Assembly: GCF_000143415.4 (NCBI RefSeq)
Contig: NW_003314315.1
Location: 1 to 64,000, forward strand
From: Selaginella moellendorffii
Lineage: Eukaryota; Plantae; Lycopodiophyta
Direction of reading: 5' to 3'
DNA: 64,000 bases
In this document: piece after piece, positions 12,881 through 40,422 of the stretch
Numbering within the stretch: the first letter of the stretch is position 1
How the letters are laid out: every line of letters begins with the position of its first letter
Program-made: the position numbers and the translations under genes
Notes under the pieces: generated by a model
What the model saw: only the letters and a program-made list of their open reading frames with translations
What the model was told of the DNA's origin: nothing
Database searches by the model: none

Positions 12881-14994
12881 GGGTTTAGATCTACTCGTTC
12901 GTTTGTGTCATCTTTACAGTCTTCGTAGGGCTTCCGACATTCTTATAGTCAAAGTCGGAAGGAACAGGATTGGTAAGCAGGACATTGACGGGAAATGCAA
13001 CAGGATGGTGTCCACGGCTGGCTTCTTGCAGTCCATTCTTACAGCCAATCTAAACAATGGCTGCCAATCAATGGGCAGAGATCAAGTTGAAGCTGGAAAG
13101 CCACTTGAGAAGCATGAAACTTGGTGACACTAGATCGTTCAACCCAGATGCTTAACGGGTCATCTTTCTAGAGCATTGATTGGAATGGAAGTTAGTTAGT
13201 AAGAATCGGCTGTGATACTTTTGCCTACGGTGGAACCTCGAAGCCATCATAAAAAGGAAACTGCACAAAACAACTGGAAACGCAGAGACAATTGATCCAA
13301 CACTTTTTTCTGTTCACGTTTCTTCCATACCGTGGGCTTGTCAATCACCATGAGACAGTTATCACTAGTAATTGGCTCCTGAAACGTTTGTGTCTTCTTG
13401 GATAGCAACAAGCATAGCTCGTTGAGATCAATGAGTTCACCATTGCGATATCTATTCAGAAGGCCAAATCTAGAGAGAGAGAGAGAGAGCATTAAGAATT
13501 CTATCTGGATCCTAAATGTCACTTCTCACCACATTCTCACAAACAGATCTTGGAATAAGCACAGCATCCCATTCTGGCATTCCAAACAGTCTCATACTCT
13601 TGATAATTTTTGTTTAAGAAATTTCTGTAAGATTAATATATACATTATGATGTAATTTCAATCACAATTCTTTAAAAAATTGTAATTTTTTATATAATTT
13701 ATACTATAATTTAATAATATAAAAATTTATAAAAAATATTGTGAAGATTATAACATTTTAATTAAGCAATATATAGTTTAAAATTGGCTTTAAATGTTTA
13801 TTTTCTTGAGTTTCACTAAAAAAAATAAGCCTTAGTTTAAAAAAGGAAACAACCATGCATGGCCATCCACAACTTTATTTGTAAAGCTCAAATACAGAAT
13901 ACCAATAAAAACAATTATTTAAACAATAAATAATCATATATGTAAAAGATGCAAAAGTAATATATCACCTCTCATGTAAAAAATTATAATTATAACTTAA
14001 TTTAAAAATAAAAACCCAAATTGTTTTAAAGGGATGCAACATGTGTTGCTATATATACAAAAATAAAAATGCTTTGCATATTGTTGTTGTTATATAATAT
14101 TATTATTATAAAATTATATTATAAAAGTAAATTGTTACATGAGTTATACCAAGAAACACGTCCAAGATATATTTATATTACATTTAGATAAAAAATAAAA
14201 ATAAATTATTAATTTACAAAAATCTTTGATATATTTCAGAAACAGTTACCCATTTGTTATAAAAATATCAATAGTTAAATAGTTTGCTTAATTTTGTATT
14301 GAAATGCATTCAATATTATAAGTTCAGTTGAAAAATTTAATAAGTGAATAAGATTGTTGGGAAACTCTCTAATTACAGTATGAGACTTTAAATCCCTTAA
14401 AAACACAAAAATTTCAAACTCTTTTGTTTTTACAAAGAAAATCTCTACACATATGTGGTCACTGGTGATGGTCTCCTAGACAGCGAGAGTTCCTCGTCGG
14501 CTCAGTCGTGGCAAATGCTGCCAGACACTTCACACGAAGAATTGACACGTACTAGGACGTGATCAGACAGATCCAATAGTATCACCACTCTAGAATCCTC
14601 TGCAGGAAAAGCACAAAGTGTTGTGAGCAAGCAAGACAATAACATGGTAGTCATAAAGCCTGAGAATAGATTGAAGACCGAGTATCACAATAACATGAGG
14701 TTACCCAGCAGTTTAGCTAATCTAATTAAATGATTTCACCTTTCTGAGCTAAGTGTACTTTCGAGGTAGAGAATTATGGCACAGACATAGGATATCCTTA
14801 AGGAAAGCGAGCATCGCTCACATCACTAGTGCCTCCAACTTAAGAAAAATAGGCCAAATAGTGCTTTAGTTATTCAAAGTCCTTGCACTGCCGAATCCAT
14901 TCTTCAGGAAGCACAAGTACTTCTTGGATGGCACTTGCACTCTTCCTATCCTACTAAACCACATTACATAAGTAACCATAGTAAACACAGCCCG

Positions 14995-15255
14995 AATGGA
15001 TCTGGGACGTACAATTTTGCCTTGCTTCTCAACACATTGTCCAGGATAACTTTGGTAAAATCCACGCACTTTGACAGCGCAAGAAGGAATGAGGATACAT
15101 CTGCCAAGAACTGGTCATCCTTTGACCCCTCGAACTTTGGAGCCACCACCACGCTCTCTTAGAAGGCAGTAATGTCATCGAGTGCCACCACCCGCTTGAA
15201 ATCCCGAAACCCTACATGATCAAGGATTCTTGATTTCCTTTAAACGAACAAACGC
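14995..15255 (-). pseudogene. Third SCP-like phosphatase fragment (3' half)
   Basis: VVVAPKFEGSKDDQFLADV..FLLALSKCVDFTKV matches 7260-7600. Confidence 0.8.
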
Positions 15256-15500
15256 AGTTGCCTCCTCGACACAGGCCTCCCAGTGGGATTCAGATGGTCA
15301 ACCACAAAGTTGGTATAAAGTATTGTCTTAGCAGGAAAGTGAGCACCTAAGGATTAGTGCCTCCAATTAAAAAATGCATCAGTTAGCTTTGAGGAGGGGA
15401 GATCTACTAGCGGCTCCGCGTATAATAGTAGCATTTTATTTAAACTCGGGCGGCAACCAAACCCATACATCCATATCCAGAGCCACAGTACATATCCAGT

Positions 15501-16060
15501 TTACAGGTTGCCAGTAGTGACTGTCTTGGGACACATCTTGGTGCAGCCAAAGCCATTCCGCTCGCAGCAGTAGTGCTCCACACCATCCTCGCACTTCCAC
15601 AGGCAGCCAAATCCATTCTTGAGACAGCAGGAGTACTTTTTCGATGTCTCACAGTTCTGCATGCACCCAAACCCATTCTTAAGGCAGCACTGGTAATTTT
15701 TGCCTTTGTCGCACTCCTGCATGCAGCCCCATCCGTTCCTGAGGCAACAGTAAGTTTCGCCAACAACGCTGCTTAGTGCTGCACACAAAAGAAATGATGG
15801 AAACAACAGTTTGAAGAGCTCAGCCGGGGTGAATATATTTGCAGCACCTTTGTTTTCCAGGATAGTAGACACATATCGTGGATCATGCGTCGCATCCACC
15901 CCTCCCGCAAAGATCGTGTCTGTGGAACAACACTTTTCAGCATTACGCAAATGAAAATTTGCAATATACCTGCTTCATTGCCCACACGAGTAGCATTGAC
16001 AGTTGCGAGCACCAGCAATGGCAGCACAAGAACGATGCAGGAAACTGGACGCAGGGCCAT
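15501..16060 (-). CDS. Secreted cysteine-rich peptide precursor with 4 tandem CCxxNG[FW]GCxxxC repeats, copy 1 (146 aa)
   Basis: Exons 16060-15970, 15919-15848, 15778-15501 (GT-AG introns of 50 and 69 bp): MALRPVSCIVLVLPLLVLATVNA-TRVGNEADTIFAGGVDATHDPRYVSTILENKALSSVVGET-YCCLRNGWGCMQECDKGKN-YQCCLKNGFGCMQNCETSKK-YSCCLKNGFGCLWKCEDGVE-HYCCERNGFGCTKMCPKTVTTGNL. Confidence 0.85.
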
Positions 16061-16834
16061 GACTATCTGAAGAAGCACACTAACAAGAAACAGCAGAAGC
16101 AGGATCTGATAGAAGTGGCATTTCATGTGTCCTATTTAAAGAAACCTAAGACCTCACAGTATCTTACTGGTCCCCAGGGGACCAGTATGATACTAGGAAT
16201 AAGTTAGGACCATCAGTGAGAGCGAGAGGTTCTTGTGGGCCTCCAAACACATAAGGCATGATAGACAACGAGAAGTCGGGACCACTTTCGAAGTTTGTAT
16301 GATCCCTTTATTTGTGCCCAAGTGATATGACATACCAGATAGAGACTAAATTGCCAACAGTTTTCAAGGTTTGGTTTGTTCTCTTGATAAATGTTTAAAA
16401 GTGCGAAACAACAGTCGCTCCTAGTTTCAACAAGCCCTTCTGTACAATCACGAGTCAAAACATCAGAACGTTCATCCTGCTCCTGGGCTACGCCATTGTT
16501 TTTCTCATGTCCGTGTTCACGCGGGTTCAGCAACTGACATCGCTGCCCCCTTCTTGTCCTGCTTGAACTTTCTGTTCGATGACCACATCACAGAACGAGA
16601 AATAGTACTGAACTTTTGGGTTGGTAGCCCAATGAGTTTAGTGCTGTTCTGGCTTACCATGGTAGCCTTGAAGCCTTCCTTTCGAACTCAGAACTTGACT
16701 TGGCTTCGTTCTCCCCCCGAGCGTCCGTTATCCAGATCCAGCCAGTCCTGAATCTCATCCCTCAATCCGGACCGGTAGTAGATGCGCTTACTGAATTCGG
16801 GTATTGCCTCCGTCATCCTAGACAAGAGCTCCGT

Positions 16835-16947
16835 AGTCATTTAATCCATCCTTGTATGCCCTCCATCGCGCTCACTTCTCTTCTTCATCACTAAGGAGAA
16901 TGCACTCTTTCAAGCAGTACGGCAACGAAAGCTTGCAATACCACTAG
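16835..16947 (+). pseudogene. BRCC45 terminal exon relic
   Basis: TTCATCACTAAGGAGAATGC..TTCAAGCAGTACGGCAACGAAAGCTTGCAATACCACTAG matches the last exon of the gene at 47494-47560; inverted copy at ~23100-23200. Confidence 0.7.
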
Positions 16948-16971
16948 CCATGTCGGCCACCTCTACTTTGA

Positions 16972-18210
16972 TCACGCTGGAACCGCTACAGCCTCCACTG
17001 ATAGAAGCTTCCCTTTGGTTTTGCAGCTTTCCAAGATCTGTGCTTGCGTTTTCTTGTTGTAACTCATTCGGTGGGACTTCATCACTCTGTAGAGACGACG
17101 AACGTTTTCTATATCACCGCCCGCGGCATAGGCTCGGATCATCGTCTGCCACCATTCCAGATTCTTTGTCTTTACGCTCTGAAACACCACCTCGGCGTCC
17201 TTCAGGCTGCCCAGCCGGATGAAGAGCTCGAGGAAGCGCCTGGCAGTCTCAAACTCGGTGGCCATCCCCAACGACGATAAGTGTGCGTGCAGCGCTCGAG
17301 CATCCTCCAGGCTCGAGCACGCATTCATCGCCTCTTGGCACATCTTCGCGTTTAGAGACGTTTGCTGTGCCGGGTCCATGTTGAGGAACAGCTTGAGCAC
17401 CTCCCTCGACTGTCCTCTCTTCTTATACGCCCCCCACACCTTCTTCCAGGTCTCGGATCCAGCGTCAACGATGACAGATCCTAAAGCTTTGCTGGCCTCC
17501 TCGATCGCTCCAACCTTGTCATACGTATCGATGAGCTGATTGACGACGGGCAAATGCGAGCGCCACCGCGAGGTCGCGAGGCAAAAGTGGACGAGCTTGG
17601 CCTCCTTGAGACCGCCCATCTCCCCACAGGCCTTGAGAACCTCCGTGTAAGTCACGGGCAGTGGCGGCGAGCCATCCAGTATCATGTCCCGGAAGAGATT
17701 GAAAGCGTCGCGATGCCGTCCATTCTCGGCCATGGCGACGATCGCCGCCGTCCAGCCCTGCTCGTTCTGCCGCCGCAAGCCCCGAAAGACCGATACCGCC
17801 GCGTCGGGGAGGCCGCATTTTCCATACGCCGTGATGAGCATCGTACCCAGCGATCGATTGCAGCGCTCGGTCATGACTATGTGATTGTGAACCCTGCGAA
17901 GATCCGGTGCCGCCTTGAAGCTGATACAGTGCCGGAGCATACCTTCTAGGGTCGCCGTCGTCGCCTCGCAGCCCTGGCATTCCAGGAGCTCCACATCCTT
18001 GCCGACGATCCCCGTCGCCTCGGCCGGATCGTAATCTACCGATGCTGGCTTGGCGACTGTGGCGACAAGCAGCAGGGAATCGCGCGGCCGCGGCGGCGGC
18101 GGAGTGTAGGGCTCCTCTGCGTCGCGCCGCGTGTTCCTAAGCTTGCTGCGCATCAGCGCCTTGGCGACGATCTCCCTCGTCTTTGGCCCATCGAGCCGGC
18201 CGAGCCGCAT
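16972..18210 (-). CDS. Pentatricopeptide repeat protein, intronless, 412 aa
   Basis: LGTMLITAYGKCGLPDAAVSVF, WTAAIVAMAENGRHRDAFNLFRDMILDG, VTYTEVLKACG, NQLIDTYDKVGAIEEA, WQTMIRAYAAGG. Confidence 0.85.
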   Translation of the reverse strand: MRLGRLDGPKTREIVAKALMRSKLRNTRRDAEEPYTPPPPRPRDSLLLVATVAKPASVDYDPAEATGIVGKDVELLECQGCEATTATLEGMLRHCISFKAAPDLRRVHNHIVMTERCNRSLGTMLITAYGKCGLPDAAVSVFRGLRRQNEQGWTAAIVAMAENGRHRDAFNLFRDMILDGSPPLPVTYTEVLKACGEMGGLKEAKLVHFCLATSRWRSHLPVVNQLIDTYDKVGAIEEASKALGSVIVDAGSETWKKVWGAYKKRGQSREVLKLFLNMDPAQQTSLNAKMCQEAMNACSSLEDARALHAHLSSLGMATEFETARRFLELFIRLGSLKDAEVVFQSVKTKNLEWWQTMIRAYAAGGDIENVRRLYRVMKSHRMSYNKKTQAQILESCKTKGKLLSVEAVAVPA

Positions 18211-18284
18211 TGTCCCAAGAACCCTAAACCCATCCCGTATCCTTTTCCATGCTGTTTTTAGGGTTTTCTAGGTCTTTCGTTGGG

Positions 18285-18450
18285 AAATGGAGATTCCGCG
18301 CTCGAGGAGATCGCCGAGTAACACAACGACCAGTTCTCTGGCATTACTTAGCTGCCAAGCCTTGGTCCCTGATCCAATGTGCTCCAGCGGCGGCGGCGCT
18401 TGGGCCATGGCCGGGGTTGGGCATCAATGACGCGGGTGGCGGAGCCTGTA
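18285..18450 (+). pseudogene. 5' fragment of the TFIIIC subunit gene
   Basis: Matches 26730-27022 with deletions (CGCGCTCGAGGAGATCGC; TGGTCCCTGATCCAATGTGCTCC). Confidence 0.75.
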
Positions 18451-20149
18451 CTCTTTTATCACTTGGACGACCTTCATGACCTGTGTCTGAGGTGAAGGCT
18501 AAGGTGGAGAATCACCGATGACCATGATCAACAAATCCCTGCGAGAAACATCCAAATGTACATCATGGAGCTTGTGTGTGACATGTTGAGGAACTTGAGT
18601 ATGCGAGATTCCGCTGCTAGAAGGGAAATCTCGTGGTGCATTCCCACTGCTGCTCCTGGTAAAGGAGGCACTGAGCTCACTAGGGGGGATCTGGACCTAA
18701 ACCAACGTGTGAAGGCACAGGCTTCTTTGCTTGACCTCGAGTATTTGGGGCGACCGACCGCATGGATGCCAGCAAAACTTTCTTTCCTTTGTCCAAAGGT
18801 GGCGGGGCTTTGATCGCGCGTTGCTGAAAAGTCTGACGATAGCTCGACTCAGCTGCAAACGAGGAGTTGTCCACCAAAGGGTGCTGCAGGACTTACTAAG
18901 GCTGCAGGCGTTGCTCAGGGTGTAACTTCCAACAGCACAATTCGTCCTGCGTACTCGATTTGCAGTGATTGCAAAAGAGACGATGGCATGGAGGACAATC
19001 AGCAGCATACGTCCTAAGGTGTCTCAACTCTAAATCTCTGCTTGCTGTGTCTGCTGTTGTTGGAGGAGAATGTGATATTATTGCATTTCCACCAACGCGG
19101 CATCTACTGTACTTGCAGATGTATCCTCTGGAGCATGAGCTGGAGAAGCTCTGTTGATGAGGCAAGCATGATCAATGACAAGAGAGGCATATATTTGTCA
19201 AATTTGGCAATCCCGAGCTCTAAGAGCATCTCCTTCTCTAGCTGTGCAACAAAGTTGAAAGCCTCTAAGCAGCCAAACCATTGTTTTTCAGCACGTGTTT
19301 TTCACATGTGCTTATGATCTTCACGCTCGCTCCAAGATCTTGTCCGGCTCGTTGCTGCAAATCTCAAGCTTCGCGCACTACAAGCATTGCGTAAACTTCG
19401 CCCATGCATCTAAACATGTCCAACCAGGGACTCTTGATTGCCTCCGGATCGAAACTCTTGATGCAAAAATTAGATAAACGACTTCCAAAAAGCTTTCCTC
19501 CTTGCTTCATATAAAATGCCGCCTTTCTAAAAAGATTCTCAAGATTCCATGCAAGCCTTTAGTGGCCATCTTGTAACTAACCACACAAGCCTCTCCTCCA
19601 GCTCTCAATCTCCTCTGCGATTGCAGTGTTGCACGGACTGCTGATAAGTCTTCCCTCTTGTTTTATTCTCTTTTTTTGGCTTTACCCAAGGAAAGAGTTT
19701 TATGTAAAGAGCTTGTTTTTTAATACTGTGGCGTGTAGAGCTGAAGCTCAAGGCATGGCCGATTCTGGTGAACTTGTAACTACCTGTGGAGCACACCCAT
19801 GGAGCATAGAGCCTTGCTTGCTGTGCCTCACTTGCTGCTGCGGCACAACAACAGCAATCCAGACTCAGAGAAGTTCTTTAGTGTAGTTTGGCTTGTGATT
19901 GTGACTAGCTGCACCAGTCTGCTACTATAGTTGCAAAAAAATAGAGGACTTTTGATGTTGTTGATCTTGTGTTTGTATCGTAATTTTTGCCTTGGAACAA
20001 GCTACTAAACACATGAATCAATTAGAAACTAACTTGAGACCTTCAATTTCCAAGAAGGCTCATGCGAATAAAGATAAACTTAACATTACTAGAATACTTT
20101 AAGTCTTAAGTAAATGGATATGCATTTGCGATAGGTTAAAATATAATAA

Positions 20150-20670
20150 AGATAAGGATAGGGGTCAAATGTTAACTCTTCTCTTTAACTACTCATACAT
20201 AGTGGCAATTGCCACTTTTTCTTGAGTTGTAACCTTGAATGTCAAGGTCGTAATCTTGACTGTCAATAAAATGCTTGAATACATAATTAAATTTGTTGTA
20301 CTTCATTAAGTCTCCTAATACTTGAGGGTAGGTAGTAGATCACCACACCACCTTTGCTATTGACTTCGTTGTAACCAATGCCCTTTTCTATACATAATTT
20401 CTTACCATGGTGCACATCTTTTTGATTGTTGTCTCCAACATTGGCCATATTAAAAGATGGTACCAGATGAATAGGAAGATGATGTTCTTCATCAGCACCA
20501 CCCAAGCCACAAGCCCAAGCTTTCATGGAGTCCCTTTGTGGATCATGGTCTTGATTCTCCTTAGAAGTGTGCCATCTTGGGTTGCTATGTTGAAGTTGAC
20601 TCTCACCTGTATTCCTAAATACCACATGTCCTCACCTAACTTACACCATTGACAACCAATCCTTTAGATC
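20150..20670 (-). mobile_element. Heavily decayed L1-like LINE ORF2 fragment
   Basis: Minus frame YLGIQV...KLGLVAWVVLMKNII...VRNYV*K...AKVVW*STTYPQVLGDL resembles the post-RT L1 motifs YLG.P, LS.AGR..L and KVAW..I.LP..GGL. Confidence 0.5.
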
Positions 20671-21967
20671 TTGTAGCGCTGTCTGGCAGTCACACCATCG
20701 GCCAGGCCCGACTTTTTAGCATTGCACAACTATATTAATGTCATTGGTTTTATTCTAGGATATTCAAACCAATGAAGTAAAGGATGAAGTAGAGGTAAGA
20801 CACTATAAGCTTACTTTTGTCTATGACTAACAAAATTACAAGGAGAATAATTACTTTATGAGCAAGAGGACAATCTAAACTCTAACAAGGTAATTTATAT
20901 GTTTTTTGATACATCTTCACTTGTTTAGGAAATGTAGACCATTGAAGATCCTCTTGAGAAAAGGCAAGGTTTGATTATTATTTTGCAGGAAAAAAAAAAC
21001 TGCAGTGAAGTTTTCAACATACCCTTGAATAGACGTAAATACAATCAGTACAGAACTCAATGGTGTTTAAAAGGCATAATTGGGTTTCCTTGCTAGATTT
21101 TGATGCTGAAGCTAAACTTGAGCAATTAATTAATTGAGTATTGCTTAAAGCCTGGAGTAGGCGTGATGTTGATCCTTAAGAGGATATGAGATGGATGAAA
21201 TTCCATATCCACTAGAAGACTCTTCAAGGAGTATAAGTTTATACATATGATTTCTTATGCTCTTGCCGTAAGTGTGTTATAATATAGATTTGTATTTATA
21301 ACAGTTCTTTCTTTTTGGTTGAAGGCAAGGAGGGAGCATGAGGAGCAATCTACGTGAAAAAGGGTATATGTGTTTGAAAGAGTACAATAGTTATTGCAAA
21401 CAAGACTCTATAAAGATGCATGTGGTTGGGGCCAGTCTGTCCATATACTGGTAAAGCATAGTATATATTTGTATTATTGTTAATCTTTAAAATAGTCCTT
21501 GGTGAAAGAAAAAAGAACTATTAGTACTTGTGTTAATAGTTTAATTCTTGCATTGTTTTTCTATTCAAACATATTATTCACCATTCAAATAGTGAAACAT
21601 GTCAATAAAACTGAGTGCAGATTGTTGCAGTTTATAGTATATAATTTAGCTATGTATGGCCAAACTACAGTCTAATATAACTCCTAGTGAGTAGGAAGTG
21701 GCATAGTTCACCTAGCCACAAGTTTCTAGTTGTATTGAATCCCTAGGGGACATAGTGCAGCTGCACCACGCCCATCTATATTTGTGCAATGTTTTCACTA
21801 CATGCTTAGTTTTTCCTTGACACAACGACGCCTTACTTCTCATCAATTCGGTTTGTTAATATGATATTTTCTTTGGATAGTGCCAAGTAGTATGTTATGC
21901 GGCACTTCACATGATTGTGGACAGGCAGCTGGGAACAAACTATTGCAATAGCAATGACCTCTCTTTT

Positions 21968-22612
21968 TCTATGCAGCTCAGCTCACTTTTTTTCCATGTC
22001 ATCTCGCTGAATACTTGTAGTTCACAAGGATATGCCTGTCCTTTCTGGAAGACCGATAGAGGAGGAAATGCAGCAGCTGGAGCGGTTTGGTGCTTGTATT
22101 AGCACAACAGTGTTGGCATCTTTTTCAACTGCCACATTGGATAATGAATTAGGATAGCCACCAGTTTCCCGTCGTTTTCATTCTCATTTTCTCTCTGTGG
22201 TTCTTAGGAAATAGTGGATCGCTTTTGGTTTTCCATGTTTGACTGTTAGTAATTCCGCTAGTTTAAACTAATGAAGCTATTTCAGACAAGGACAAAAATA
22301 CCTCTAACATTGTCAAACCATCCTTGTTGTAAATCTGCTGAGATCAACAAGTTGTTCTGTAACCTGTCCTCCTTTCGGACCCTTGACCTTGACACCGCCT
22401 ACTGTTTTGTTAACCGTTTAATGACCTTGAGCAGCATTTTAGGTTAGAAAGCAGCATCCTTTACCTGCCGACCAAGATCGGACACAACAAGAATCTTCGA
22501 AAACAAAAGAAAAACGCAGGCAAAACAGGAGTGATTACCTTTCCATCAGCTTCCACAAATGGCTCTCATTGCCGGCACATAACCGTTCATCGTCAACTGC
22601 TTTCCACCATTG
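21968..22612 (-). pseudogene. Inverted, deletion-riddled internal fragment of the TFIIIC subunit gene
   Basis: Reverse complement of ~27529-28612 including intron sequence, compressed by many deletions. Confidence 0.8.
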
Positions 22613-23086
22613 GCGCTGGATCCGAGACCTGGAAGAAGGTATAAGAAGAGAGGACAGGTGCTCAAGTTGTTCCCCAATACGGACCCGGCACAGCAAACGT
22701 CTCTAAACCCAAAGATGTGCCAAGACGCGATGAATGCGTGCTCGAGCCTGGAGGACGCTCGAGCGCTGCATGCACACTTATCGTCGTTGGGGATGGCCAC
22801 CGAGTTTGAGACTGCCAGACGCTTCCTCGAGCTCTTCATCCGGCTGGGCAGCCTGAAGGACGCCGAGGTGGTGTTTCAGAGTGTACAGACAAAGAATCTG
22901 GAATGGTGGCAGACGATGATCCGAGCCTATGCTGCGGGCGGTGATATAGAAAACGTTCATCGTCTCTACAAAGTGAGGAAGTCCCACCGAATGAGTTACA
23001 ACAAGACAACGCAAGCACAGATCTTGGAAAGCTGCAAAACAAAAGGGAAGCTTCTATCAGTGGAGGCTGTAGCGGTTCCAGCGTGA
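22612..23086 (+). pseudogene. 3' half of the PPR gene (duplicate of 16972-17465)
   Basis: Near-identical C-terminus ...KTKGKLLSVEAVAVPA; 5' half missing here. Confidence 0.85.
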
Positions 23087-23993
23087 TCAAAGAAGAGGTG
23101 GCCAACATTGCAAGCTTTCGCTGCCGTACTGCTTGAAAGAAGCATTCTCCTGAGTGATGAAGAGAAATGAGCGCGATGGAGGGTATACAAGGATGGACAA
23201 AATGACTACGGAGCTCTTGTCTAGGATGACGGAGGCAATACCCGAATTCAGTAAGTGCGTCTACTACTCGTCCGGATTGAGGGATGAGATTCAGGAGTGG
23301 CTGAACTTAACTTGGCTTCTTTCTCTGCTTTCCACACTAACAGATCAAAGGTGGCATCTGTCATCCAGATCGAGAGTTCGAAAGCAAGGCTTCTACGTCA
23401 GACAAGGCTACCATGGTAAGCGAGAACAGCACTAGACTCATTGGGCTACCAACCCAAAAGCTCAGTACTATTTCTCGGTCTGTGGCGGGGTCATCGAACA
23501 GGAAGCTGAAGAAGTTCAAGCAGGACAAGAAGGGACCTTTGGTGGCGGCAACGTCAGTTCGCTAGAAGAAAGATGATTGCTAAACCCGCGTGAACACTGA
23601 CATGATAAAAACAATGGAGCTGCTAGGAGCAGGATGAACGTTCTGATGTTTTGATCTCGTGATTGTACAGAAAGGCTTGTTGAAACTTGACCCCTGTTTA
23701 GGAGTGAGTGTTGTTCACCTCTAAATATTTATCAAGAGAACAAACCAAACCTTGAAAATGCTATTGGCAATTTAGTCTCTATCTGGTAGTTGGCCACAAA
23801 TAAAGGGACTTTCAAGTGGTCCCGACTATCTCGTTGTGTATCATGCCTTAGGTGTTTGGAGGCCCACAAGAAACTCTCGCTCTCACTGATGGTCCTAACT
23901 TATTCCTAGTATCTTACCGGTCCCCGCATACTGTTTCTTTAAATTGGACACATGAAATGCCACTTCTATCTGATCTGCTGTTTTCAGATAGTC

Positions 23994-24554
23994 ATGGCCC
24001 TGGCTCCAGTTACCTGCATCGTTCTTGTGCTGCCATTCCTGGTGCTCGCAGCTGTCAATGCTACTCGCGTCGACAATGAAGCAGGTATATTGCAAATTTT
24101 CATTTGCGTAATGCTGAAAAGTGTTGTTCCACAGAAACGATCTTTGCGGGAGGGGTGGATGCGACACATGATCCACGATATGTGTCTACTATCCTGGAAA
24201 AAGAAGGTGCTGCAAATATATTCAACCCTGGCTGAGCTCTTCAAACTGTTGTTTCCATGATTTCTTTTGTGTGCAGCACTAAGCAGCGTTGTGGGCGAAA
24301 CTTACTGTTGCCTCAAGAACGGATGGGGCTGCATGCAGGAGTGCGAGAAAGGAAAAGAGTACCAGTGCTGCCTCAGGAATGGGTTTGGGTGCATGCAGAA
24401 CTGTGAGACATCGAAAAAGTACTCCTGCTGCCTCAAGAATGGATTCGGCTGCCTGTGGAAGTGCGAGGATGGTGTGGAGCACTACTGCTGCGCGCGGAAT
24501 GGCTTTGGCTGCACCAAGATGTGTCCCAAAACAGTCACTACTGGCAACCTGTAA
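23994..24554 (+). CDS. Secreted cysteine-rich peptide precursor, copy 2 (146 aa)
   Basis: Exons 23994-24084, 24135-24206, 24277-24554 (introns of 50 and 70 bp). All 16 repeat Cys conserved. The 1-nt indel relative to copy 1 falls in intron 2. Confidence 0.85.
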
Positions 24555-24839
24555 ACTGGATATGTTCTGTGGCTCTGGATATGGATGTATGGGTTTGGCT
24601 GCCGCCAGAGTTTAAATAAAATGCTACTATTATACGCAGAGCTCTCTTGGCTCCGCTAGTAGATCTCCCATCCTCAAAGCCAACCGATGCATTTTTTAAT
24701 AGGAGGCACTAGTGCTGCCAATGAATCCTTAGGTGCTCACTTTCCTATGTTTTCGTTGGAATTGGGGCAGACGTGGCAAGGCCCATGCCTTTAAGGAGGC
24801 CTTTAAGGAATGTGTGGATGTCAACTTTGTACTGGGAGG

Positions 24840-25090
24840 CTCGTTTGTTCGTTTAAAGGACTAAAATCAAGATCCTTGACCATGTATGTTTCGGGATTTC
24901 AAGCTGGTGGTAGCACTCGATGACATTATTGACTTCTACCAAGGTCAAGGGAGCGTGGTGGTGGCTCCAAAGTCTGAGGGGTCAAAGGATGACCACTTCT
25001 TGTAACCCCGTTCCTTCTTGCGCTACCAAAGTTATCCATCTGGAATATTGGACAATGTGTTGAGAAGCAAGGCAAATTGTACGTCCCAGA
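24840..25090 (+). pseudogene. Fourth SCP-like phosphatase fragment
   Basis: GTGGTGGTGGCTCCAAAGTCTGAGGGGTCAAAGGATGACCACTTC; inverted partner of 14995-15255. Confidence 0.75.
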
Positions 25091-25111
25091 TCTATTTGGG
25101 TTGTGTTTACT

Positions 25112-25189
25112 ATGGTTACTTATGACTGCTGTGAGAGGAATGGCTTTGTCTGCCCCAAAATGTGTCCCTATGAAGAATGCCAGGAATAA
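25112..25189 (+). pseudogene. Relic of a diverged CRP paralog
   Basis: VTYDCCERNGFVCPKMCPYEECQE*: same repeat, different tail. Confidence 0.65.
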
Positions 25190-26282
25190 TTTGATCAGAT
25201 TCCAGTATAGGATGTAGTTTGCTGGAACTCGCTACTTATCAGAACGGATATATTGGTATGGCTGCCGCCTGAATTTGAATAACTAAAGCACTATTATATG
25301 AGTATGGACTATCTTTTTAAGTTGGAGGCACTAGTGATGTGAGCGATGCTCGCTTTCCTTAAGGATATCCTAAGTACTCCCTGTGCCATAATTCTCTACC
25401 TCAAAAGTACACTTAGCTCAGAAAAGTGAAATCATTTATAAAGAGACTAGCTAAACTGCTGCGTAACCTTGTGTTATTGTGAAAGTTCTTGCTTTTTCGT
25501 CATTCTATTTACTTTAATCGATCTTCAATCTATTCTCGGGCTTTATGATTCCCATATTCTTGTCTTGCTTGCTCACAACACTTTGTGTTTTTCCTGCAGA
25601 GGATTCCAAAGTGTTGGATCTGGTACTATTGGATCTGTCTGGCCTTATCATGTCCTAGTATGGAGACCGTCTATGTGTAAAAGTTTTTGATATTTTCTTT
25701 GGGAAAACAAAAGAGTTTGAAACTTTTGTGTTTTTTGGGATAAAGTCTCATACTTATATTAGAGATGTCCCAACACTTATTAAAGTCTTCAACTAAAATT
25801 ATAATAATGAATGCATTTCACTACAAAATTAAGCAAGCTATTTAATTATTGATATTTTTTATAACAAATACTGGGTAACTGGAATAAAAGTTTCTGCTAG
25901 GATTGCATGTAGTAAAACAAATAGCCACAGCTGAGCTCTGAGAATTACTTTGATTGGATAGTGTAAAGTTGTGATGAGTTTCTGTATAAATGTAGCACTT
26001 TCCTGGACGACTGGAAGATCAGATTCCAAGTCTTTAAAATCACCTTATACGTTTGCTTGTCTGAGAAGATCCTCGGCTTTTAGCTCCTGGACTTTCTCCA
26101 AGGCGTGTTCCTGGCTCAAATGGACGCGCTAAGATTTACAGTGTTTCTAGACACAGCAATATACGGACAGCACCGCCAGATCCTGGGGGCAAGCTCAGCC
26201 ATCCAGGTAGTAGTAGGAACCGGCAGCCTTTTGTTCGCGATCTTTGGTGGAATCGAGCTTGTTGATCCGCGGCCTAAAGTTT

Positions 26283-26670
26283 GCTCGTTCTGCCACCGCA
26301 AGCCCCGACCGCCGGGAGTCCGCATTTCCCATATGCCGTGATGAGCATCGTGCCCAGCGATCGAGCGCAGCGCTCAGTCACGACGATGTGATTGTGAACC
26401 CTGCGATGATTCGGCGCCGCCTTGAAGCTGATACAGCGCCGGAGCATACCTTCTAGGTCGCCGTCGTCGCCGCATTCCAGGATCGTTGTCGACGATCCCC
26501 GGATCGTAATCTACCGATGCTGGCTTGGCGACTGTGGCGACAAGCAGCAGGGAATCGCGCGGCCTCGGCGGCGGTGGAGTGTGGGGCACCGCGTGTTCCT
26601 GAGCTTGCTCCGCATCAGCGCCTTGGCGACAATCTCCCTCGTCTTTGGTCCCAAGAACCCTAAACCCATC
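26283..26670 (-). pseudogene. 5' half of the PPR gene (decayed direct copy of ~17760-18235)
   Basis: TPPPPRPRDSLLLVATVAKPASVDYDP with deletions. Confidence 0.8.
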
Positions 26671-26739
26671 CCGCGCCGAGAATATCCTTTTCCGTGCCTC
26701 CTCTCTGTTTTTAGGGCTTCCTAGGTCTTTCGTTGGGAA

Positions 26740-29700
26740 ATGGAGAAGCTGGTGGTTGCCGCGCTCGAGGAGATCGCAGCGGAAGGGCCTCGAGGTGAGC
26801 GCGATCCTCCGAAATATCGTTTCGCTTCTCTCTCGCGTGATTCCAATCGATTTTCTGCCCCGCAGGATGCGATCTTGCCAAGCTTTGGTCCCTGATCCAA
26901 TGTGCTCCGGCGGCGGCGGCGCTTGGGGCCGATGTTCTCGACGATCACATCAAACAGGAGATCTGGAGGAGCTTGCTGCGGGTGCCGGGGTTGAGCATCA
27001 CTGACGCGGCCGGGGGAGCCTGTGATTCCAGCTTGGTGGAGACGTTTGAAACGGCAGAGAGAATGGGAGTCGTCGCGGTGGCCTCGCAGGAGCTACGAGA
27101 CGGGTGCTTGGGGCTATACGATATCAGCCATGCTGACACACAGCCTTCTCAGATCCAGCACGCCATTCTCGAGCGTCTGGCAAGTGCACGGTACTACATT
27201 TTTTCTCTTTCGATTCTTCATATCTCTTTTTTCTTCTGTTGTGAAAGAAGTTTTGGTTTTTGTTTCTTCTAGGACGAAAGGAGTGACCCAGAACGAGCTT
27301 GGGAAAGAGTTCAAAGTGGAAGGAAACAAGCTCTTTTACATCCTCAGGAGTCTGGAAGTCAGAGGCCTCATAGTGAGGAAGTCGATACTTTTGCGCAACA
27401 ACAAGAAGAACAGCTCCATCGTTGTCACCAACCTTGTGCATCTCGCTCGGTATGCACTAAACTTGTCCCTGAATTCACACCAGCGTCTAGAATCCAACAC
27501 GGTTGAGGAGGCCGGGGAGGGCTCTCCCAATGGTGGAAAACAGTTGACGATAAACGATGATGTGCCGGCAATGAGAGCCATTTGTGAGAAGCTTCAGGAA
27601 GCTGATGGAAAGGTAATGATTTCATCACTTCTGTTTTGCCTGCGACTCTCACTGTTTCTCTCTTTTTTTTCGAAGGTTCTTGTTGTGTCCGATCTGAAAT
27701 TAACACTGGGGTACCGTTTAGCAGCTGGTCATCGTGCATGGCGACGAGTGGGTTACTATGTTTAAGTTTCCTCCTTAGTGCTAACTGTTTGCATTATTAC
27801 AGCTTGTGAAGAGATTAGAAGAAGGCGGGTATGTTACTAATATTAAAGCAAAAATTGGTCGGAAGGTAAAGGATGCTGTTTGCTATGTTCTTGGGCTACT
27901 AACGTAAAAAACTCTTTTCAGGAGAAGCCTTGTCTCCAGCTGTTGAAGCCGTTTAATGACCTTGAGCAGCAGTCTCCTGCAGGCGATGGTGACATCGAGC
28001 TCAAGGGTCCGAAAAGAGGACAGGTCACACAACAACTTGTTGATCTTTCAGTTGATCAGCAGATCTACAACATGATTGACGATGAAGGTGCCGATGGTGT
28101 GACAATGATGGAGGTATTTTTCTCCTTGTCCGCTTCTATCTTGTTCTCAATAGTAACTTCAGGTATGGAAGCGGATTGGCTTAAACAATAAGCGGAATTA
28201 CTATCGCATCCAGAACATGACAGTGAAACATGGTCTTCTTTTTGAAGCTGAAAACCACAAGCGATCCACTATTTATCGGCTAAGAACCACAAAGAGAAAA
28301 CGCAGTGACAGTGAGAACGAAAACGACGATGAACCCAGAGAAACTGGTGCCGATCCCGATTCATTATTCAAAATGGAAGTTGAAGAAGATGCCAACGCCG
28401 TTGTGGCATCTCTCCAACAAGAGGGAGCAGCGAGTACAAGCAGTCCAGCTGACCAGACGGCTCCAGCTGCTGCATTTCCTCCTCCATCGCTCTTCCGGAA
28501 AGGACAGGCGTATCCTTGTCTCACCGTTACAACTACAAGTATTCAGCGAGAGAAACATATCTTGGCGCGGTTACAGGAAGAAAAGTTTCTCGTGCGAGCT
28601 GAGCTGCATAGGTGGCTGGAGAGCATAAGCTCTCAAAAGACCACTATGGACCGTAAAACGCTGATTCGGACACTTGAGAAGCTGCAGAGTGAAGGGAAAT
28701 GCAAGTGCGTCACGCTCGAAATCCCAGGGACAACAAACTGTGGCCGCAAACGCAAGGCAGACATCGTCTTGCTTCCGTCAGTAGAGCTGGACTTCGACCT
28801 TTTGAACGCGATTCATGAGCGCATCCGAAAAGCTGAGACCGACAATCGACTCCAGGGACGAGAGAAAAGCGCAGCGGCAGGCTCGACAGCGGTTGTAGTG
28901 ACGGGGTTGAAGAGAATGAAGTTGGAACACAGGAAGCCTCTTCTTGACCCAAGCACGAAGCCGGTGGCACTTCAAGAAAATGGCTATATTCCTGCTAAGA
29001 TGGTTCGTGTCCGTATGCTGCACCATTTTCTCTGGAGGTACACTAACAATCAGCACATTGGGAATGGGTACAGAATTTTCGGCTTAACGGACGCTTTGCT
29101 GACGATGCCACTGGAATTGTTCTTACAAGTGGTTGGTTCGAGCAGGTCCATCAATAACTTGGCGGAGCGCTGTAAGCAAGGTACGCGTATCTGTGAACTT
29201 TCTCCAACCGAGCAGGCCGCTCTTCTTGATTCTACGGCTGGAGGACGGCTGGCTTGGCTGGTGGACGTACTTCGCCGGCTCAAGGTCAGTAGTTCTTCAG
29301 CTGGTTCCATACAGATTTTTCGAACCATGTTGGTTAAATTGTTCGTTTTCTTTTCTGTTTAGCTTCTCCGCTTCGCGCTCGACTGCCCGGTTTCTCCACA
29401 AGCCACAGGTCAATTTGGTAGCATAACCCTGATGGAAGCCACTGTATCCTACGCGATGGAGGAGCAAATATATATTCAGGAGCCTCCTCCACCCCCACTT
29501 CATGCGTGGACGAGTAAAACTGCACCTGATTCCTTGACTCAACACAATTTCGACATTGTTTCCGAAGGACAACTCGAAAAATACTGGGAGTTTTTGGAAT
29601 ATTTCTACTCGGGGGCAGACCCATCCATTGCTCGACATGCTTTTCCGGGATCAAACGTTCCTGAAGTGAGTATGCAAGGTTTACATCTTCAGTCACTTTC

Positions 29701-32431
29701 ATGTGTTGCTGGATTGACAGGTATTTGGTTTGAGATCCTGGACATCGCTACGTGTGATGACTATGGACCAGCGCAACGAGCTTTTCAAGCGACTAAACGA
29801 TGTAGAACGTTTGTCAGTGAAGGAGTGCGCTCAGGTTTCTAAGGATTTGAACCTTACGCTCCAGCAGGTTCGTTACTGTGCTTCAAAGGCATTACTTCAA
29901 GGAAATAATTTCAGGTCCTGCGGTACTCGTATGAGAAAAACCGGAGACTACGATTACAATCTTTAAAGGCTGCTGACGACTTCATGGAAGTGTTCACGAA
30001 CATTTCAGATTTGCCTGGTGAAACTTTCCTTTCCAAGGCCGTTCCGAAACAGATCACAGAAGTTGCAAACGAAGACGCGAGTGGTGGAGACGAAATTGAT
30101 GACAATGTCAACCATGGCAATCATATCAGTGTTAACAAGCTAAAACCAGCGAGGTCGAGATTTCCTTGGTCTGATAGCGTGGACAGGTACGTCCTGTTGT
30201 TGTATTTTATTAATGCGTGTTGATTTATTGTTTTCTATGCTGTAGGGTGGTTGCCTTCGCATACGCAAAGCACCGGGCACTTACAATGAATCGTATAATC
30301 TGGAAAGAAGTGAAAGATCTTCCTGCACCTCCAATGACGTGTCGCAGGCGGATATCACAATTGAAGACTGAACCTACTGTAAAGAAGGCGCTTTTCAACC
30401 TTTGTTCGCTACTAGCTGCTCGTTACGATCGGTACTGCAGTCTCGAAGACCAGGAAGGTGGAGGCGGAGGCTTCGAATATGATCCAGAGGGATGTGACAT
30501 GTCCGGGTTCAAAGAGGCAGAGAGTCGTCACTACTCTGAATACTACTGGGATAATCCAAGGGATCATGCGGTGGCTTCTGCGCTGGACGAGTTTATCAGG
30601 TGCAAGAATCTCTCGCGCTCAGCTGTTAACAGGCAGATCCCAAAGAAGGGTGTTACGGGGTCGGGCAGCAACGCGCTTGCAAACAGCATAGAGCCTCATC
30701 GACTTTTGAAGACACAAGTGGTGGCAACAAAAGTTTCGGTAAAGAAACGTGCCAAACGAGCAGCGAAAAGAAGGCCAGCTTCTCTTCAGATTGCGAATCC
30801 CGAGCAAGTTGTTCGTACGTCTCTTGGAGCTGCAAATGCCGTGGAGTTGATCAAGCTCATCTTTCTCAACTCATATGTCAGCGACGGTCGTGTACACGTG
30901 CCAAAGGCTTTTGTAGACGGCCTCCATCAGTTCAGACACTCGGATATACATGCAGCGTTTAGTTTCCTGAAGGACCGAAGCATGGTGGTAAGTGAGCTTC
31001 CAAATATTGCATTCGTTCGTTTGTGACGGACACTAACTTCCGCTGGCAGACTTCCGGCGGTGGTGAACTCTCATTTTCGTTGTCAGAAGAGTTCAACGCT
31101 AATGCCTTCTCAAGTCCTCTTCCGAGTACGACCTTCCACGAGTTCATGGCCTTCTCCGAGTGGTTTCAGCAGCACGAGGGAGAGCTAGATCAAGGCTGGG
31201 TTCCGTACGATTTGGAAGAAAATTATGGACAGCTTGTACACCTCCTTGGAAGGGTGACAGCCGGTGAGCTACGACTAATGCCAAGACTTCCGCGGGATGG
31301 AATTGGTGAAAGCGATGATCCTAGAACCATTGGATGCTGTATAAAGAGAAGGTTTGACAGTGCGGAGGCTGAACTGGAAGACTGTACTGCCAAGGCGAGA
31401 TTAAGGGGTCTTGGGGGGCAGGATTACTTTCAAGCGGCTCGTCGCGAGAGAGGCTTTCCAGATATTCAGACACTGGTACACCGCGAGGCTTTTACTACAC
31501 CAAGTTTGCTGCACTCGCTGAGCATCGAAGAGGACAATATTCTGATAGATTTCCCGTCTCACACCGAAGAAGGGGAACAATACCACGACGATGCAGGCAG
31601 CCTCTGCGAACCTGAGACTTCGGAAGCAGCAATGCGAGCAATCCAAGACGGTGGTGAGGAAGGCCTTAGTATGGACGAGCTAGGGACGCGCTTGGGATTG
31701 TCCGGTAGGCCATTCACTTTCGTGCTTGAGCGTCTTAATGGTGACACTGTTGCCTTGTGGCTTTCAGGAAACCCGCGTGATATGTCTCGAGCCGAGCAGT
31801 ACGTTAAGGAGCTGGAGTGGTCAGGTCGCGTGAGACGGGTATACTGATTAGAGGTTTAGTCTGAAGTTTTATTAAGAACTATCTCCCTACAGGTGAATGC
31901 TTTTGACCACGTCCGTGCGGTAGTGCAGCCTCACTCAAGGCGTTACAATCTTGGATTTCCGAGCACGACAGAAGCAGAAGGAGAGGATGCGGAGACGGAA
32001 AACACTCAACCGATCCTTCCCTGGTTCACTTCCCAAGGGACTGTCAACACAAGCGTCTTGACGGATTTGAGTCGCCGTGTTATAGGCATTGTCATGGCCA
32101 GCCCTGGCATTTCCGAGGTAAGAGTTTTGTGTCAGCCAGCCCAACGCATGAATCTGTTCTGTGCTGCAGGAGAATCTCCTTCGGCAGATGGACGTGTTGA
32201 ATCCACAGGTTGGTGACAAGAAGTTTTGGTAAGTTTGCTAATTGGTTCAAGTGTCGCTTGCAGACTGCTCGGGAACTGGTCAACTTGCTTCTTGTGGATG
32301 GTAAGATCGTTATGAGAAGCTCGACGTTGGAAGCAGTGGCTCCTCCTCCTTTGCTGGGCAACCTCACCACCAAGAGATGTCACAAAGCAGTACATTATTA
32401 TGTAAATAGTCTGGACACTCTGGCCGTTTAG
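26740..32431 (+). CDS. GTF3C1: B-block-binding subunit of TFIIIC (GTF3C1/Tfc3 family), multi-exon
   Basis: MEKLVVAALEEIAAEG, ILERLASARTKGVTQNELGKEFKVEGNKLFYILRSLEVRGLIVR, MDRKTLIRTLEKLQSEG, ENGYIPAKMVRVRMLHHFLW, MPLELFLQVVG, DLPAPPMTCRRR, VNAFD, ILPW, PGISE; ~50-70 bp GT-AG introns. Confidence 0.88.
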
Positions 32432-40282: not shown

Positions 40283-40422
40283 NNNNNNNNNNNNNNNNNN
40301 NNNNNNNNNNNNNNNNNNNNNNNNNNNNNNNNNNNNNNNNNNNNNNNNNNNNNNNNNNNNNNNNNNNNNNNNNNNNNNNNNNNNNNNNNNNNNNNNNNNN
40401 NNNNNNNNNNNNNNNNNNNNNN
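40283..40422. other. Assembly gap (140 N)
   Basis: Run of n. Confidence 1.

Follow-up and report, generated by a model that had tools for sequence, protein, structure and literature searches.

An inverted pair of Selaginella moellendorffii genes for a putatively secreted protein of four cysteine-rich repeats

The DNA analyzed here, called the window, is the first 64 kb (64,000 nucleotides) of scaffold GL377619.1 of the Selaginella moellendorffii v1 assembly (GCA_000143415.2), and window and scaffold coordinates coincide. It carries two inverted copies of a gene for a 146-aa protein with four cysteine-rich repeats. Copy A is a real, spliced, and strongly transcribed gene, and the repeat domain of both copies is under purifying selection. 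With moderate confidence, we propose that the protein works as one intact, disulfide-rich extracellular domain of four hairpins, with defense-type binding of a microbial or cell wall target. The two genes are laid out as follows.

15501 to 16060, minus strand: copy A gene (SELMODRAFT_421834, EFJ16357.1), 146 aa, protein P0014
16060-15970, 15919-15848, and 15778-15501, minus strand: copy A exons (stop codon included)
15969-15920 (50 nt) and 15847-15779 (69 nt), minus strand: copy A introns 1 and 2
23994 to 24554, plus strand: copy B gene (SELMODRAFT_421837, LOC9661021, EFJ16204.1), 146 aa, protein P0015
23994-24084, 24135-24206, and 24277-24554, plus strand: copy B exons
24085-24134 (50 nt) and 24207-24276 (70 nt), plus strand: copy B introns 1 and 2

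All four introns are of the GT-AG type, and the coding sequences (CDS), spliced by script and translated, are 441 nt each. The translations are letter-for-letter identical to EFJ16357.1 and EFJ16204.1 in GenBank, which bears out the 146-aa protein that a sequence-only reading of the window had assembled across two short introns. The same reading took the gene to be undescribed. Indeed, this part has to be withdrawn: GenBank has listed the very same 146-aa models ever since the genome was first annotated, and the place of copy B on GL377619.1 already carries an annotated gene. The existing annotation calls the members of the family "hypothetical" or, in several cases, gives the automatic UniRef name "Granulins domain-containing protein," and an exact-protein lookup of P0014 returned no gene on record. 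Both copies are already annotated, yet uncharacterized. Splicing and alignment of the two copies agreed with the description of an intact inverted pair: there are 24 nucleotide and 13 amino acid differences, the CDS are free of indels, all 16 repeat cysteines (16/16) are kept in both, and a 1-nt indel in intron 2 is the only one within the gene.

The RNA data for positions 15351-16250 consisted of contigs from three older runs and raw reads from one 2026 run (X24), from which only two reads could be placed and which has little weight. Both spliced joints, 15778/15848 (69 nt skipped) and 15919/15970 (50 nt skipped), are present in contigs of X5 and of X7, two runs from separate studies. Both joints read CT..AC on the plus strand and, hence, GT..AG on the strand of the gene; the two predicted introns are thus removed in contigs from two studies. 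One 330-nt contig of X7 covers all three exons of copy A with 0 mismatches, and the word depth over the copy A region was in the thousands to tens of thousands (runs X5 and X1). A loose end in X5 is a copy-B-type exon 1 end joined at the intron 1 site, and it agrees with the copy A allele of the other haplotype; it was also counted in favor of the copy B gene model. As a side observation, exon 3 is deeply covered up to 15526, yet none of the four runs has a contig over the 3′ untranslated region (UTR) at 15351-15500; variant sites in this region may interrupt the contigs, or the sequenced plants may have a different 3′ end.

Two RefSeq models, P0017 (168 aa) and P0001 (156 aa), start at an in-frame ATG further upstream (16126-16124, minus strand). 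Closer inspection revealed that this ATG sits only 6 nt past a TATA-like box seen in the sequence.

16133 to 16140, minus strand: TATA-like TTTAAATA, upstream of copy A

Since the RNA contigs extend only to 16106 and 16091 and stop downstream of this box, the upstream ATG probably lies outside the mRNA, the RefSeq extension is probably an annotation artifact, and the 146-aa model is probably the right one.

The protein is divided into a leader, a spacer, and the repeat domain.

15992 to 16060, minus strand (copy A), and 23994-24062, plus strand (copy B): signal-peptide-like N-terminus, residues 1-23, from hydrophobicity and the −3/−1 rule
15522 to 15761, minus strand: copy A repeat domain, four 20-aa units, from the sequence pattern
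24294 to 24533, plus strand: copy B repeat domain, four 20-aa units, from the sequence pattern

The best 12-residue hydrophobic window of the N-terminus has a mean Kyte-Doolittle value of 3.2, and V-N-A, followed by T, matches the −3/−1 rule (small residues at −1 and −3), with a likely cut after V-N-A. An N-terminus of this kind, with a hydrophobic h-region and an A-x-A-type site, is common to all paralogues despite their differing sequences, and we infer that the proteins enter the secretory pathway. The spacer that follows has 38 residues and is mildly acidic (6-8 D/E versus 3 K/R). It is conserved among the closest paralogues only; a second group has another sequence in its place, and the paralogue P0006 has none, and therefore, the spacer is dispensable. 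The repeat unit is exactly 20 aa long and consists of CC-x6-C-x3-C and a 7-residue linker, which gives a domain of 84 residues that terminates in a conserved M-C-P-K. The signal peptide, the acidic pro-region of ~40 aa, and the four repeats of ~20 aa that had been described before thus reappear, as far as the sequence can tell, as a signal-like leader, a 38-residue spacer, and exact 20-aa units.

Across 25 two-repeat units, all four cysteines and the glycine that precedes the third of them never vary (C, C, G, C, C), and the asparagine is nearly invariant; some paralogue units have x7 instead of x6. The linkers hold no processing-type residue (Asn/Asp or dibasic) that is conserved across paralogues. 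At the hairpin tip, a basic and an aromatic residue are nearly invariant in all four units. The repeat domain is mildly basic (pI about 8.3, net charge about +4, 11 K/R versus 7 D/E) and is composed of 19% Cys, 13% Gly, and 11% aromatic residues. With its signal-like N-terminus, its small size (146 aa), and its 16 invariant repeat cysteines, the protein has the general features expected of a plant secreted cysteine-rich protein. As tip aromatics, the four units of the window genes carry W/F/F/F; every unit of P0002 and P0005 has Y at this position, and nearly every unit of the P0003 group has F. In the family alignments, the repeats are orthologous between paralogues, and the changes of the tip aromatic are therefore parallel substitutions. 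Such clade-uniform tips may reflect a functional coupling of the four tips into one shared surface.

The ratio of nonsynonymous to synonymous substitution rates (dN/dS) between copies A and B, from small counts, was 0.46 overall, 0.81 in the signal peptide and spacer, and 0.26 in the repeats. For copy A or B against the older paralogue P0002 (dS about 0.55), the repeat domain gave 0.17. The intact state of the pair is thus matched by repeat-domain values of 0.17-0.26, and the repeat domain is under purifying selection. Linkers (dN/dS of 0.12-0.33) and hairpin cores (0.15-0.19) are about equally constrained.

To model the fold, AlphaFold2 was given an alignment of the 25 distinct two-repeat units, cut from ten family proteins, which triples the depth per column. 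The resulting 38-residue model had a mean pLDDT of 95.8, and four of the five models were above 93. It predicts strands at 2-8, 11-17, 22-28, and 31-37, that is, two β-hairpins with two-residue turns at Gly-aromatic and a tight 4-residue loop that links the neighboring hairpins. The N-G-aromatic-G motif falls at the hairpin turn of the model. Its conservation is better explained by this position than by an asparaginyl endopeptidase site, and the Asn-Gly pairs, which the sequence-only reading had offered as such sites, are unlikely to serve for cleavage.

The same reading had left room for a release of the four units, and the linkers bear on this point. In an Ib-AMP-like polyprotein, the linkers would be cut and four two-disulfide peptides of 13-20 residues, with an antimicrobial or signaling role, would be set free. 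Such a precursor would fit the signal-like leader, the acidic spacer, and the four nearly identical units of four cysteines each that follow them. It would also fit a cysteine number per unit that is a multiple of four and the existence of 3-repeat variants, both as for autonomous units. Furthermore, CC-x6-C-x3-C resembles the CC-x8-C-x3-C of Ib-AMP, whose precursor holds six units (PMC10136942). However, the effective linkers have 4-7 residues compared to acidic spacers of 16-35 residues in Ib-AMP, no cleavage-type residue of the linkers is conserved across paralogues, and purifying selection on the linkers is as strong as on the cores. In addition, the linker is modeled as a tight loop between hairpins, and the units are near neutral compared to a charge of +5 in Ib-AMP. 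In sum, we consider the polyprotein unlikely.

One folded domain is favored instead because of the exact 20-aa period, the short modeled loop, the lack of a conserved cleavage residue in the linkers, and the constraint on the linkers. In our model, the signal peptide would direct the 146-aa pre-protein into the secretory pathway. Each unit would form a β-hairpin with the CC doublet on strand 1, the N-G-aromatic-G turn, and C-x3-C on strand 2, and the four hairpins would most likely be held together by the 16 cysteines in a single compact, disulfide-rich domain, which would function uncut in the extracellular space. The four aromatic and four basic tip residues would be displayed as a multivalent binding surface. 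The most likely role would be the defense-type binding of a microbial or cell wall target; it is favored by a leader of the secretion type, a high depth of transcripts, a rigid repeat rich in disulfides, the exposed basic and aromatic tips, and the birth-and-death dynamics of the family.

The same tips may be read in another way. In a multi-headed protease inhibitor, each tip, C-L-[K/R]-N-G-aromatic-G-C, would serve as a canonical reactive loop against enzymes of the trypsin or chymotrypsin type, comparable to those of Bowman-Birk and potato type II inhibitors. This would explain why one basic and one aromatic residue hardly vary at the exposed tips of four units in a tandem, small, disulfide-rich protein of the secretion type. 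Multi-domain precursors of protease inhibitors are common in plants. Against this, neither sequence nor fold matched an inhibitor family in Pfam or PDB, the loop sequence is unlike the known canonical loops, and three of the four units in P0006, the most divergent paralogue, have a changed tip motif; we regard an inhibitor as improbable. An extracellular signaling ligand, i.e., a cysteine-rich peptide that a receptor kinase would perceive in development or reproduction, has to be considered as well. Many plant peptide ligands are secreted, cysteine-rich, small, and lineage specific and derive from duplicated genes, and the family shares these traits, with secretion-type leaders. However, the very high transcript word depth better suits an abundant effector or structural protein, a four-fold internal repeat is unusual for ligands, and there is no known link to a receptor, and therefore, we give a ligand role little credence. 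A metal-binding, metallothionein-like protein was rejected in view of the secretion signal and the regular pattern of hairpins and disulfides.

Several points weigh against the one-domain binding protein proposed here. Short linkers of conserved length are cleaved in some plant polyproteins. The mild basicity of the domain (pI about 8.3, net about +4) is unlike that of typical cationic antimicrobial peptides. Modeling of the whole 91-aa region from 5 sequences gave a poor AlphaFold2 model (pLDDT 46), and the confident model was built from paralogous repeat positions of one species, which is an unorthodox alignment. Furthermore, the predicted register puts three cysteines per unit on one face of the sheet and one on the other; a simple pairing within each hairpin is not obviously consistent with this modeled register, and some disulfides may bridge neighboring hairpins.

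A Pfam hmmscan at E ≤ 10 of the two window proteins and six family members matched no family, including granulin, thionin, and hevein; the sole row obtained for the family, DUF362 at E 0.5, was judged to be chance. The family profile found no chain among the PDB sequences at E ≤ 10, and a feature search of the ESM Atlas gave no usable match. The statement that the repeat matches none of the known plant cysteine-rich peptide classes thus stands for Pfam and for the PDB sequences. A word-indexed search of 5.8 billion clusters returned three proteins, and an hmmsearch of 1.84 billion representative proteins returned four real relatives and one spurious repeat protein. Among the protein collections searched, whose lycophyte coverage is unclear, all relatives were S. 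moellendorffii paralogues, in line with the lineage-restricted family expected from the sequence alone. In the literature searched, nothing relevant was found for the gene ids, the accession numbers, the motif strings, or Selaginella granulins. Taken together, the family appears to be lineage restricted within the known class of plant secreted cysteine-rich proteins and without a characterized relative.

With the two-repeat model, Foldseek against PDB gave no meaningful match (one row at E 9.4), a wide VIA-align search gave no hit at Z ≥ 2, and an atlas fold search returned generic hairpins only; a model of 38 residues is too small for these nulls to prove a new fold or to weigh against granulin. 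It is tentatively imaginable, and a more doubtful proposal than the binding role, that the CC-x6-C-x3-C unit represents a new, disulfide-locked β-hairpin-repeat fold confined to spikemosses, in which the aromatic and basic tips of a rigid four-hairpin domain would serve the multivalent binding of a microbial or cell wall polymer or the blocking of proteases. If true, this would be a structural class of plant extracellular defense protein without a counterpart in seed plants. The UniRef name of several members implies a divergent granulin-domain protein. Both are rich in CC and made of β-hairpins (here, as predicted). Nevertheless, the members have no match to PF00396 up to E ≤ 10, a PDB search with the family profile at the same cutoff returns no granulin chain, and the protein has four identical CC-x6-C-x3-C units instead of a 12-cysteine motif with four CC pairs. 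The fold searches gave no granulin either, which counts for little with a 38-residue model. A granulin is very improbable.

The family is dynamic, with 3 or 4 repeats per protein, tandem clusters, and relic fragments, and has roughly 9-10 loci per haploid genome when loci are read individually. Three members form a tandem cluster in direct orientation on GL377567.1 (L002:5088-5273, 10313-10501, and 14272-14517). Two of these three genes have three repeats only, with extra residues before the third cysteine. The cluster sits amid duplicated fragments of Peptidase_S28 and Spb1/FtsJ genes. On another scaffold, six residues are missing from one allele of a three-repeat paralogue (P0012/P0011, LOC9649156), among them the third cysteine of one unit; this odd-cysteine form may be a defective allele or an annotation mis-splice.

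The window copies are not only constrained but also exchange sequence.

15960 to 16460 (approximate), minus strand: gene conversion tract of ~500 bp, with the promoter, 5′ UTR, and exon 1 of copy A

The tract was defined by site patterns among four copies (window 15960-16460 versus L003:1012-1601 and L003:10001-10561). Between a point ~400 nt before the ATG and the end of exon 1, the comparison gave 24 copy-A-only sites and 0 locus-specific sites, whereas locus-specific sites dominate on both sides of the tract. The copy A allele on GL377612.1, the second haplotype scaffold, has a promoter, 5′ UTR, and exon 1 of the copy B type and a 12-nt in-frame deletion within the signal peptide, and the breakpoint is in or next to intron 1. 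Copy-B-type sequence in the copy A allele of the other haplotype points to ectopic gene conversion within the inverted pair. The two copies owe their intact state in part to this conversion and in part to purifying selection.

The pair is part of a larger inverted duplication, in which further remnants of the family are found.

14243 to 17468 (approximate): left arm of the inverted duplication, with copy A, a relic repeat, and the 3′ part of a pentatricopeptide repeat (PPR) gene
22610 to 25881 (approximate): right arm of the inverted duplication, with a truncated PPR copy, copy B, and a relic repeat
14890 to 14930, minus strand: relic repeat downstream of copy A, degenerate, cysteines partly lost (S-K-K-Y-L-C-F-L-K-N-G-F-G-S), resembling repeat 3
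25125 to 25168, plus strand: relic repeat downstream of copy B, degenerate, resembling repeat 4 and followed by a stop

Over the gene, the arms are gap-free and 92-98% identical; elsewhere, they are mostly rich in indels and often more diverged, with the exception of the duplicated end of the PPR gene. GL377612.1 has the same inverted arrangement, and the pair is therefore kept in both haplotypes. The relics lie ~450-650 nt downstream of each copy, at corresponding places of the arms. They are fragments of a further (third) family member and predate the inverted duplication.

An intact PPR gene (412 aa; 16972-18210, minus strand) adjoins copy A. Its 3′ part is duplicated and inverted in the right arm (22610-23086, plus strand), and its 5′ part has a second copy, ~80% identical, beyond copy B (window entry 26314-26927). 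The strand of this second copy is recorded inconsistently: it is listed as plus, yet described as lying on the same strand as the PPR gene, which is minus. The layout of the PPR copies indicates a rearrangement more complex than a single inversion-duplication. Pfam scans of 20 flank open reading frames found only PPR and TFIIIC among the neighbors. Hence, of the broken neighbors named by the sequence-only reading, the partial PPR copy is real, whereas the phosphatase and the BRCC45 relic found no support in these scans. A gene for the B-block-binding subunit of TFIIIC (1617 aa; 26740-32431, plus strand) flanks the right arm, and the assembly has a gap of 140 N at 40283-40422.

All other vascular plants are sister to the lycophytes, whose repertoire of secreted peptides and defense proteins is almost unexplored. 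Here, a family without a characterized relative is abundant in RNA, actively duplicating, and under selection. With a domain of 84 residues and a simple, confident hairpin-repeat model, the protein is easy to synthesize or express, and peptide engineering could gain a new disulfide scaffold from the hairpin repeat. The locus also offers a clean case, on a small scale, of two inverted genes whose similarity is maintained by purifying selection together with gene conversion.

Among known systems, the Ib-AMPs of Impatiens balsamina match the pattern most closely: they share the four-cysteine CC-C-C framework, the C-x3-C end, and an aromatic and Gly-rich segment after CC, and several units are encoded in one secreted precursor (PMC10136942). 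However, the spacing is x8 in Ib-AMP and x6 here, and the motif CC-x8-C-x3-C is absent from our proteins. The Ib-AMPs are highly basic (+5) peptides of 20 residues, separated by acidic propeptides of 16-35 residues in a six-unit precursor (PMC10136942), whereas our units are near neutral and have 7 residues between the cysteines of one unit and the next. Ib-AMP1 is described as a loop without β-structure, in contrast to the β-hairpins predicted here. In view of the distance between a lycophyte and a eudicot and of the lack of detectable sequence homology, the likeness is probably convergent.

Thionins resemble the repeat in an N-terminal CC-x7-C-x3-C and are made as secreted pre-pro-proteins with an acidic domain (PMC8279376), but they are single domains of 45-47 aa with 6-8 cysteines, a helical hairpin, and the acidic domain at the C-terminus, and no thionin match was found in Pfam for our proteins. 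The Selaginella thionins reported in the same study are ordinary class 1 thionins, for which PCR confirmation failed (PMC8279376). They were considered as relatives and are unrelated to the hairpin-repeat family.

Hevein-type domains and truncated hevein-like peptides were also compared. The chitin-binding core of hevein has a CC-x-x-aromatic/Gly-...-C motif with exposed aromatics, and lectins such as wheat germ agglutinin contain small disulfide domains in tandem. Our repeat shares the local CC motif with exposed aromatics, which serves as a lead only; there is no match to Chitin_bind_1, each unit has 4 cysteines compared to 6-10, and spacing and length differ. Granulins (epithelins; PF00396) have a 12-cysteine motif with four central CC pairs, C..C..CC..CC..CC..CC..C..C, and consist of stacked β-hairpins with a ladder of disulfides. 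Like granulins, our proteins are small, CC-rich proteins of the secretory pathway with disulfide-linked β-hairpins, the latter as predicted; unlike granulins, they are built from a repeated 20-aa module that matches no Pfam family or PDB sequence. The two may share a building principle, disulfide-linked hairpins, and this would be a likeness and not a membership.

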